DNA from: Dendrobates tinctorius
Taxonomy: Eukaryota
Length of the DNA stretch: 64,000 nucleotides
Direction of reading: 5' to 3'
Assembly: GCF_039654945.1 (NCBI RefSeq)
Contig: NW_027361825.1
Span: forward strand, 14,880,001-14,944,000
Positions 3,553 through 3,677 of this stretch are shown in pieces. The notes under the pieces were generated by a model that was given only the letters and a program-made list of their open reading frames with translations, searched no databases and was not told where the DNA came from. How positions within the stretch are numbered: position 1 is the first letter of the stretch; every line of letters starts with the position of its first letter. The translations under genes and the position numbers were made by a program.

Positions 3553-3677
3553 ATTTCCTTTACTGTTGGAAACACTTCGTTGACACGACCGAATCATTTA
3601 TTCCATGGCGACATTTGGCCAAAACCTATCACAATACTTTTCAGTGGTTGTCGGACGCTTTACAGTCCGATTCATAG
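3553..3677 (+). CDS. Terminal coding exon of an AID/APOBEC-like deaminase (paralogue 1): (D)[40 protein letters not shown]
   Basis: Pyrimidine-rich acceptor ttgtgttatAG and phase-1 start. It carries the D-F-x-Y-C-W-x-x-F-V and F-x-P-W motifs of APOBEC helices 5-6 and is clearly paralogous to exon 18051-18157 ([13 protein letters not shown] shared). Not in the ORF track. Confidence 0.8.

Follow-up and report, generated by a model that had tools for sequence, protein, structure and literature searches.

A second, probably non-deaminating AID/APOBEC-type gene upstream of a complete copy in the poison frog Dendrobates tinctorius

Within a 64,000-nucleotide window of Dendrobates tinctorius DNA (the window being the whole stretch that was analysed), a short segment proved to be a genuine exon that is transcribed and closes a second deaminase gene of the AID/APOBEC type, here called gene A or paralogue A, lying upstream of a complete copy, gene B. 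Very probably, gene A stands first in a dendrobatid two-gene tandem pair, has 3553-3677 as its last coding exon, and is spliced but probably non-deaminating. In the mechanism that we propose, a tandem duplication in the dendrobatid lineage would have given rise to two head-to-tail small genes of the AID/APOBEC type (about 165 aa), and an upstream catalytic exon of gene A would be joined to 3553-3677 by a phase-1 splice (G/AT, giving Asp). Gene A would keep the ancestral layout of two coding exons and the ancestral C-terminal tail. Gene B (11004-11129, 12916-13324 and 18051-18157) is the complete copy with HAE and PCxxC. The gene A product, if it acts at all, may do so as a nucleic-acid-binding subunit or as a partner or decoy subunit. 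The features of both genes are as follows.

1-3552, forward strand: presumed to be the distal part of gene A's last intron (no APOBEC-like match; 3436-3550 uncovered by contigs; Phyllobates intron about 5.4 kb)
3551-3552, forward strand: AG splice acceptor of the gene A terminal exon (ttttgtgttatAG followed by AT; the fit of a contig from run X2 begins at 3551)
3553-3677, forward strand: terminal coding exon of gene A (translation; 85% match to the Phyllobates terribilis model P0003; Pfam APOBEC_C)
3678-4075, forward strand: 3' UTR of gene A, minimum extent (contigs of runs X18, X1, X19 and X2)
11004-11129, forward strand: first exon of gene B (P0001 and P0002 N-termini as tblastn queries; sequence)
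12916-13324, forward strand: catalytic exon of gene B with HAE and SWSPCNNC (Pfam; structures; 93% match to Ranitomeya imitator)
18051-18157, forward strand: terminal coding exon of gene B, the counterpart of 3553-3677 (tblastn pairing; C-terminus alignment)

The terminal exon of gene A consists of 2 nt that finish an Asp codon, 40 further codons and a TAG stop at 3675-3677, and it is missing from the list of open reading frames because it is only 41 codons long. Our translation of 3555-3677 was identical to the peptide given in the initial annotation, which had described the segment as an uncalled exon. The letters t-a-g stand at 3550-3552, and 14 of the 20 preceding bases are pyrimidines (70%). 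The exon begins in phase 1, and as its leading Asp is a split codon (G/AT), the G must come from an upstream exon. In the gene B equivalent the codon is split as G/AC at 18051, where the catalytic exon ends with CAA ATA G/GTAAGA at 13324/13325 and the last exon opens with AC. The two terminal exons therefore agree in strand (both forward), in acceptor type (AG) and in phase (a split Asp codon), just as had been claimed for them, and when each peptide was searched by tblastn against the 64-kb window, the two exons matched one another (59% identity across 32 residues, E 1e-10) and no further copy came up.

At the protein level, the 40-aa peptide scored 24.6 bits against Pfam APOBEC_C, compared with a curated cut-off of 23.6, also matched C-terminal positions of NAD2 and APOBEC2, and could be aligned with 11 frog proteins. 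The exon contains the alpha5-alpha6 pattern of the superfamily, F-x-x-CW-x-x-FV ... F-x-PW ... WL, with the positions conserved in all of the frogs (F, CW, FV, F.PW and WL) retained; the zinc motif H-x-E ... P-C-x-x-C is absent from 3553-3677 itself. Judged from its sequence, gene A is a homologue by descent of the AID/APOBEC superfamily. P0003 was modelled with AlphaFold from 13 frog sequences (pTM 0.82); the model has its elements in the canonical deaminase order, with alpha5 at residues 126-136 and alpha6 at residues 149-165, and the gene A exon corresponds to about residues 128-168. The position of the intron is also that of the human AID gene (AICDA), which we take to be interrupted at K142/D143, just before D-(F/Y)-x-x-C-W, so that alpha5 and alpha6 are likewise encoded after the intron. 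AID has one more exon, encoding a nuclear-export tail, whereas the alpha5-alpha6 exon is terminal in the frog genes, and the score against the Pfam AID model was only 21 bits.

Searches with the full-length sequence and with the C-terminus only, among 5.8 billion proteins, identified a single protein with the gene A C-terminus: P0003, a 168-aa P. terribilis model from the automatic NCBI annotation, named 'DNA dC->dU-editing enzyme APOBEC-3H-like'. Its residues 128-168 correspond to window positions 3552-3674 at 85% identity (tblastn, E 2.6e-20), that is, 35 of 41 residues when the split Asp codon is counted and 34 of 40 when it is left out, whereas P0003 and the terminal exon of gene B are only 61% identical. 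The exon is thus orthologous to the last 41 residues of P0003, which upholds its first assignment as the terminal exon of a second APOBEC paralogue.

In the P. terribilis assembly (GCA_046119375.1), the P0003 gene spans 5.9 kb with an intron of about 5.4 kb, and a 213-aa gene on the same strand (P0002, the gene B orthologue) starts 2.2 kb downstream of it; a head-to-tail two-gene array therefore exists in a related genus. Adjacent genes on the same strand are seen both in Phyllobates and in the window, where the start-to-start spacing of the two terminal exons is 14,498 bases (18051 minus 3553). The initial annotation had proposed a head-to-tail array about 14.5 kb apart, and both this spacing and the two separately annotated genes of P. 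terribilis agree with it. The cluster comprises two genes only. The P. terribilis pair resembles that of the window in the position of the split Asp codon, in gene order and in the DALQS(D/E)S tail, but it belongs to a different genus, its intergenic distance is 2.2 kb as against about 7.3 kb here, and the last intron of gene A in the window carries a Tc1 insertion. The closest annotated genome, that of Ranitomeya imitator, has no gene model in the 10 kb upstream of gene B. Copy A may have been lost in other frogs, may have decayed there or may be merely unannotated.

We also searched the window for the remainder of gene A. Using the gene B exon and the full P0003 protein as tblastn queries, we did not find a second catalytic HAE/PCxxC exon anywhere in the 64 kb, and 1-3552 gave no APOBEC-like coding match by tblastn, in agreement with the earlier reading of that interval. 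The same reading had placed the rest of gene A upstream of the window, which is consistent with the 5.9-kb extent of the P0003 gene and with an X2 contig that carries 445 nt before the splice point. From the orthologue and the geometry of this contig, we infer that the catalytic exon of gene A lies outside the window, upstream.

In the last intron of gene A lies a DNA transposon of the Tc1/Sleeping-Beauty type, 1,616 bp long (1766-3381). Its terminal inverted repeats are 212 nt long and perfectly complementary, and its transposase is an unbroken 340-aa frame on the minus strand (1987-3009) in which HTH_SB, HTH_Tnp_Tc3_2 and DDE_3 are all present. Contig depth over the end of the transposon runs from thousands to tens of thousands in the aligned runs. 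The element looks young and is possibly still mobile. It ends 172 nt upstream of the gene A acceptor and could be disturbing the splicing of gene A in D. tinctorius.

Evidence for transcription comes from the contigs of four public runs (X1, X2, X18 and X19), which are labelled no more precisely than 'RNA?' or '?' as to library type, aligned to 3101-5100. For the gene A exon and its 3' side, contig cover from the four runs is confined to 3551-4075, and cover is zero in all four runs at 3436-3550, on the intron side, and at 4106-4306. Contigs of the window's own species, identical to it in sequence, cover 3578-4075. The individual spans are 3578-3788 and 3791-3944 for X18, 3796-3993 for X1, 3856-4075 for X19 and 3794-3990 for X2. 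Depths are low, at 2-19 overall and 2-5 in the window's own species. Such coverage is what a terminal exon followed by 0.4 kb or more of 3' UTR leaves.

A contig that crosses the acceptor was seen in X2, a close relative, and none was seen in the window's own species. Letters 446-615 of this 615-nt contig lie on 3551-3720 with 5 differences in 170 nt, and of the coding differences 2 of 3 are synonymous. Its first 445 nt do not fit anywhere in 3101-3550. The break falls at most 2 nt from the predicted exon start, a slack to be expected if the exon before it ends in ...AG, and its position at the acceptor fits a spliced mRNA. The 445 nt, which could accommodate a short leader and the 382 nt of coding sequence that precede the exon, would then be the spliced-in upstream part of gene A.

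If the absence of a catalytic exon from 1-3552 were taken at face value, 3553-3677 could instead be an orphan duplicated last exon with no catalytic exon upstream, transcribed by accident. However, the P. terribilis gene model that contains the orthologous exon is complete, with two exons, and the contig of the relative joins 445 nt of other sequence at the acceptor. When 700 nt around each terminal exon were aligned, we found no DNA similarity outside the coding part. Similarity that stops at the exon argues against a recent copy of a fragment and equally against a recent segmental copy. We therefore consider an orphan exon highly improbable and continue to treat 3553-3677 as the last exon of a gene whose other coding exon lies upstream.

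The downstream member of the pair is the better-defined gene. The catalytic exon of gene B matched Pfam NAD1, APOBEC2 and APOBEC_N at E values of 1e-21 to 1e-24 and the solved structures of APOBEC3G and AID at 1e-16 to 1e-10, so that gene B shows both the H-x-E ... P-C-x-x-C motif and the fold of the superfamily. A search with the gene B protein returned frog proteins only, the nearest being those of R. imitator (93%) and P. terribilis (83%), under the automatic names APOBEC-1-like, 3G-like, 3H-like and single-stranded DNA cytosine deaminase-like. The first exon of gene B begins with an ATG and matches an N-terminal extension, 51 residues long, that the NCBI models of R. imitator and P. terribilis (213 aa) carry. 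It contains a TGA at 11118-11120, 9 nt before the donor CAG/GTCAGT, so here exon 1 can be no more than an upstream open reading frame or leader, and a 213-aa form of gene B in D. tinctorius is ruled out by this stop. Gene B probably starts at the ATG at 12943, which gives 162 aa and aligns with the starts of 159-170-aa frog proteins; the 213-aa NCBI models may be longest-ORF artefacts.

Two further observations concern the surroundings of gene B. The sole exact match to the ISRE consensus GAAANNGAAACT in the 64 kb lies at 10955-10966, 38 nt upstream of the exon-1 ATG, with a TATAAA beside it at about 10981; as one match turned up somewhere in the window in 23 of 100 shuffles, the site is suggestive by its position alone. 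A degraded remnant of a Tc1-type transposase (15015-15789, minus strand), with frames of 218 aa and 83 aa and HTH_Tnp_Tc3_2, lies within the 4.7-kb intron of gene B.

The segment 3553-3677 might also be the 3' end of a chimeric transcript from a neighbouring promoter, or of an A-B read-through that yields a double-domain protein, and splicing into double-domain proteins had been raised in the initial annotation. Such an origin seems to us very unlikely, as contigs cover a 3' UTR beyond the TAG that closes the exon, and the Phyllobates models are two separate genes. The double-domain candidate was also followed through the sequence and rejected: a phase-1 donor placed onto the acceptor at 12916 meets a stop after 34 codons, so that an A-B fusion would not be open.

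As for what gene A encodes, the P. terribilis orthologue gives the clearest indication. In an alignment of 13 frog proteins, H47 is at least 90% conserved and E49, C75 and C78 are invariant. P0003 alone among the full-length models has Gln at H47 (sequences read by eye); its motif is QAE...SWSPCDDC, with the His replaced and the Glu and both Cys kept. The upstream catalytic exon had been expected to be of the HxE type, and the QAE of the orthologue speaks against that expectation. We infer that gene A of D. tinctorius has QAE as well. A zinc-binding His seems to have disappeared from the upstream copy, and the gene A product may not be a working deaminase. Given Gln in place of a zinc-ligand His in the orthologue, gene A would be transcribed and spliced but probably unable to deaminate.

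The same replacement could, however, mean that the change from His to Gln killed gene A, leaving a slowly decaying pseudogene that is still transcribed, and that the exon is an open and spliced but functionless remnant. Beyond QAE at a nearly invariant zinc ligand, decay would be in keeping with the lack of an annotated gene A beside gene B in R. imitator, with P. terribilis being the only species to yield a protein model with the gene A tail, with the low transcript depth in the window species and with the Tc1 insertion in the intron near the gene A acceptor. Against it, the entire 168-aa frame of P. terribilis is open, as is the terminal exon here, which keeps the positions conserved across frogs, and the gene A exon has changed no faster between genera than the gene B exon (6 of 40 residues versus 4 of 35). 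Nonsynonymous change is also well under synonymous change: over 32 codons, the A and B exons differ at 16 of 78.5 nonsynonymous sites (pN 0.20) and at 13 of 17.5 synonymous sites (pS 0.74, saturated). As weak evidence, this ratio points to constraint, and not to diversifying selection, in the gene A exon. The initial annotation had compared the array with the mammalian APOBEC3 expansion and suggested that conflict with pathogens or transposable elements could lie behind the divergence; this single comparison leans toward purifying change. We hold decay to be unlikely; the open P0003 frame, the open exon here and a rate in A no faster than in B favour a retained copy that probably does not deaminate.

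The age and direction of the duplication were examined with a maximum-likelihood tree of 16 frog proteins. Phyllobates A is sister to the gene B clade of Phyllobates, Ranitomeya and the window (support 90/94), and this grouping of A and B leaves out Rhinoderma, Leptodactylus, Bufo and the older frogs. The position of A as sister to the B clade within dendrobatids indicates a duplication specific to the dendrobatid lineage. The single-copy frog proteins end in ...WLQDALYSD, ...WLLDALNSD or ...WLRGALQSDWPTY and the gene A exon in ...WLSDALQSDS, whereas the three proteins of the B clade are cut short at WLMS or WLMG. On this comparison of C-termini, gene A is the copy that has kept the ancestral frog tail, and gene B is a shortened, derived copy. 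The initial annotation had described helix 6 of the 3553-3677 exon as strongly diverged; this agrees with where the exon has diverged, in its second half, but the direction that was implied is reversed, the exon at 18051 being the derived one.

To place the family, we compared the full frog proteins with Pfam models. They scored 111-125 bits against NAD1, 100-109 against APOBEC2, 98-108 against APOBEC_N, 97-103 against SNAD4 and 88-100 against NAD2. As NAD1 is barely ahead of APOBEC2, APOBEC_N, SNAD4 and NAD2, we call the frog family no more than NAD1-like. Inactive APOBEC3 domains retain HxE/PCxxC; the gene A orthologue is unlike them in that the zinc-ligand His itself is replaced. NAD1 is present in amphibians, evolves fast, belongs to the core vertebrate clade, has one small deaminase domain and is typically single-copy (Krishnan et al. 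2018, PMC5889660); the NAD1 clade (PF18778) is the top Pfam match of the frog family but differs from it in copy number, as there are two copies here. True APOBEC3 genes are placental (PMC5889660), and the 'APOBEC-3H-like' name of P0003 is automatic. The pair nonetheless resembles the mammalian APOBEC3 arrays in being a lineage-specific head-to-tail duplication in which an active-looking copy stands beside a probably inactive one, and we count the ISRE consensus near the gene B start as a further likeness. It differs from them in consisting of two single-domain genes with no in-frame double-domain route. The recurrent origin of inactive versions is a known trend among AID/APOBEC proteins (PMC5889660). 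Our literature search found nothing on dendrobatid or anuran APOBEC paralogues.

Elsewhere in the window, weak, chance-level tblastn matches at 25625, 26017, 26406 and 26796 within 25625-26858 point to tandemly repeated units of about 390 bp. This repeat region is followed by 135 N at 27552-27686, an assembly gap or masked run. The interval 34000-40000 has a G+C content of 52-55%, compared with about 40% elsewhere, and could be a CpG-island-like region of a neighbouring gene.

These data correct the annotation of the locus, which has two genes instead of one and in which the short segment is a true exon. To an AID/APOBEC family treated as usually single-copy in vertebrates (PMC5889660), they also add a tandem duplication that is dated and specific to dendrobatids. 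Tandem duplication is the type of event to be expected of AID/APOBEC genes, and the orthologous pair was already present as automatic models in P. terribilis. More tentatively, and as a possibility that we would not yet call probable, gene A may be a conserved pseudo-deaminase, with a His-to-Gln change that predates the split between Phyllobates and the Ranitomeya group, serving as a partner or decoy for an interferon-responsive, active gene B. The pair would then be a counterpart of the inactive-plus-active arrangement of APOBEC3G, reached independently in poison frogs. If gene A is truly a retained His-to-Gln pseudo-enzyme, the pair would offer a simple natural system for asking why inactive APOBEC copies persist.
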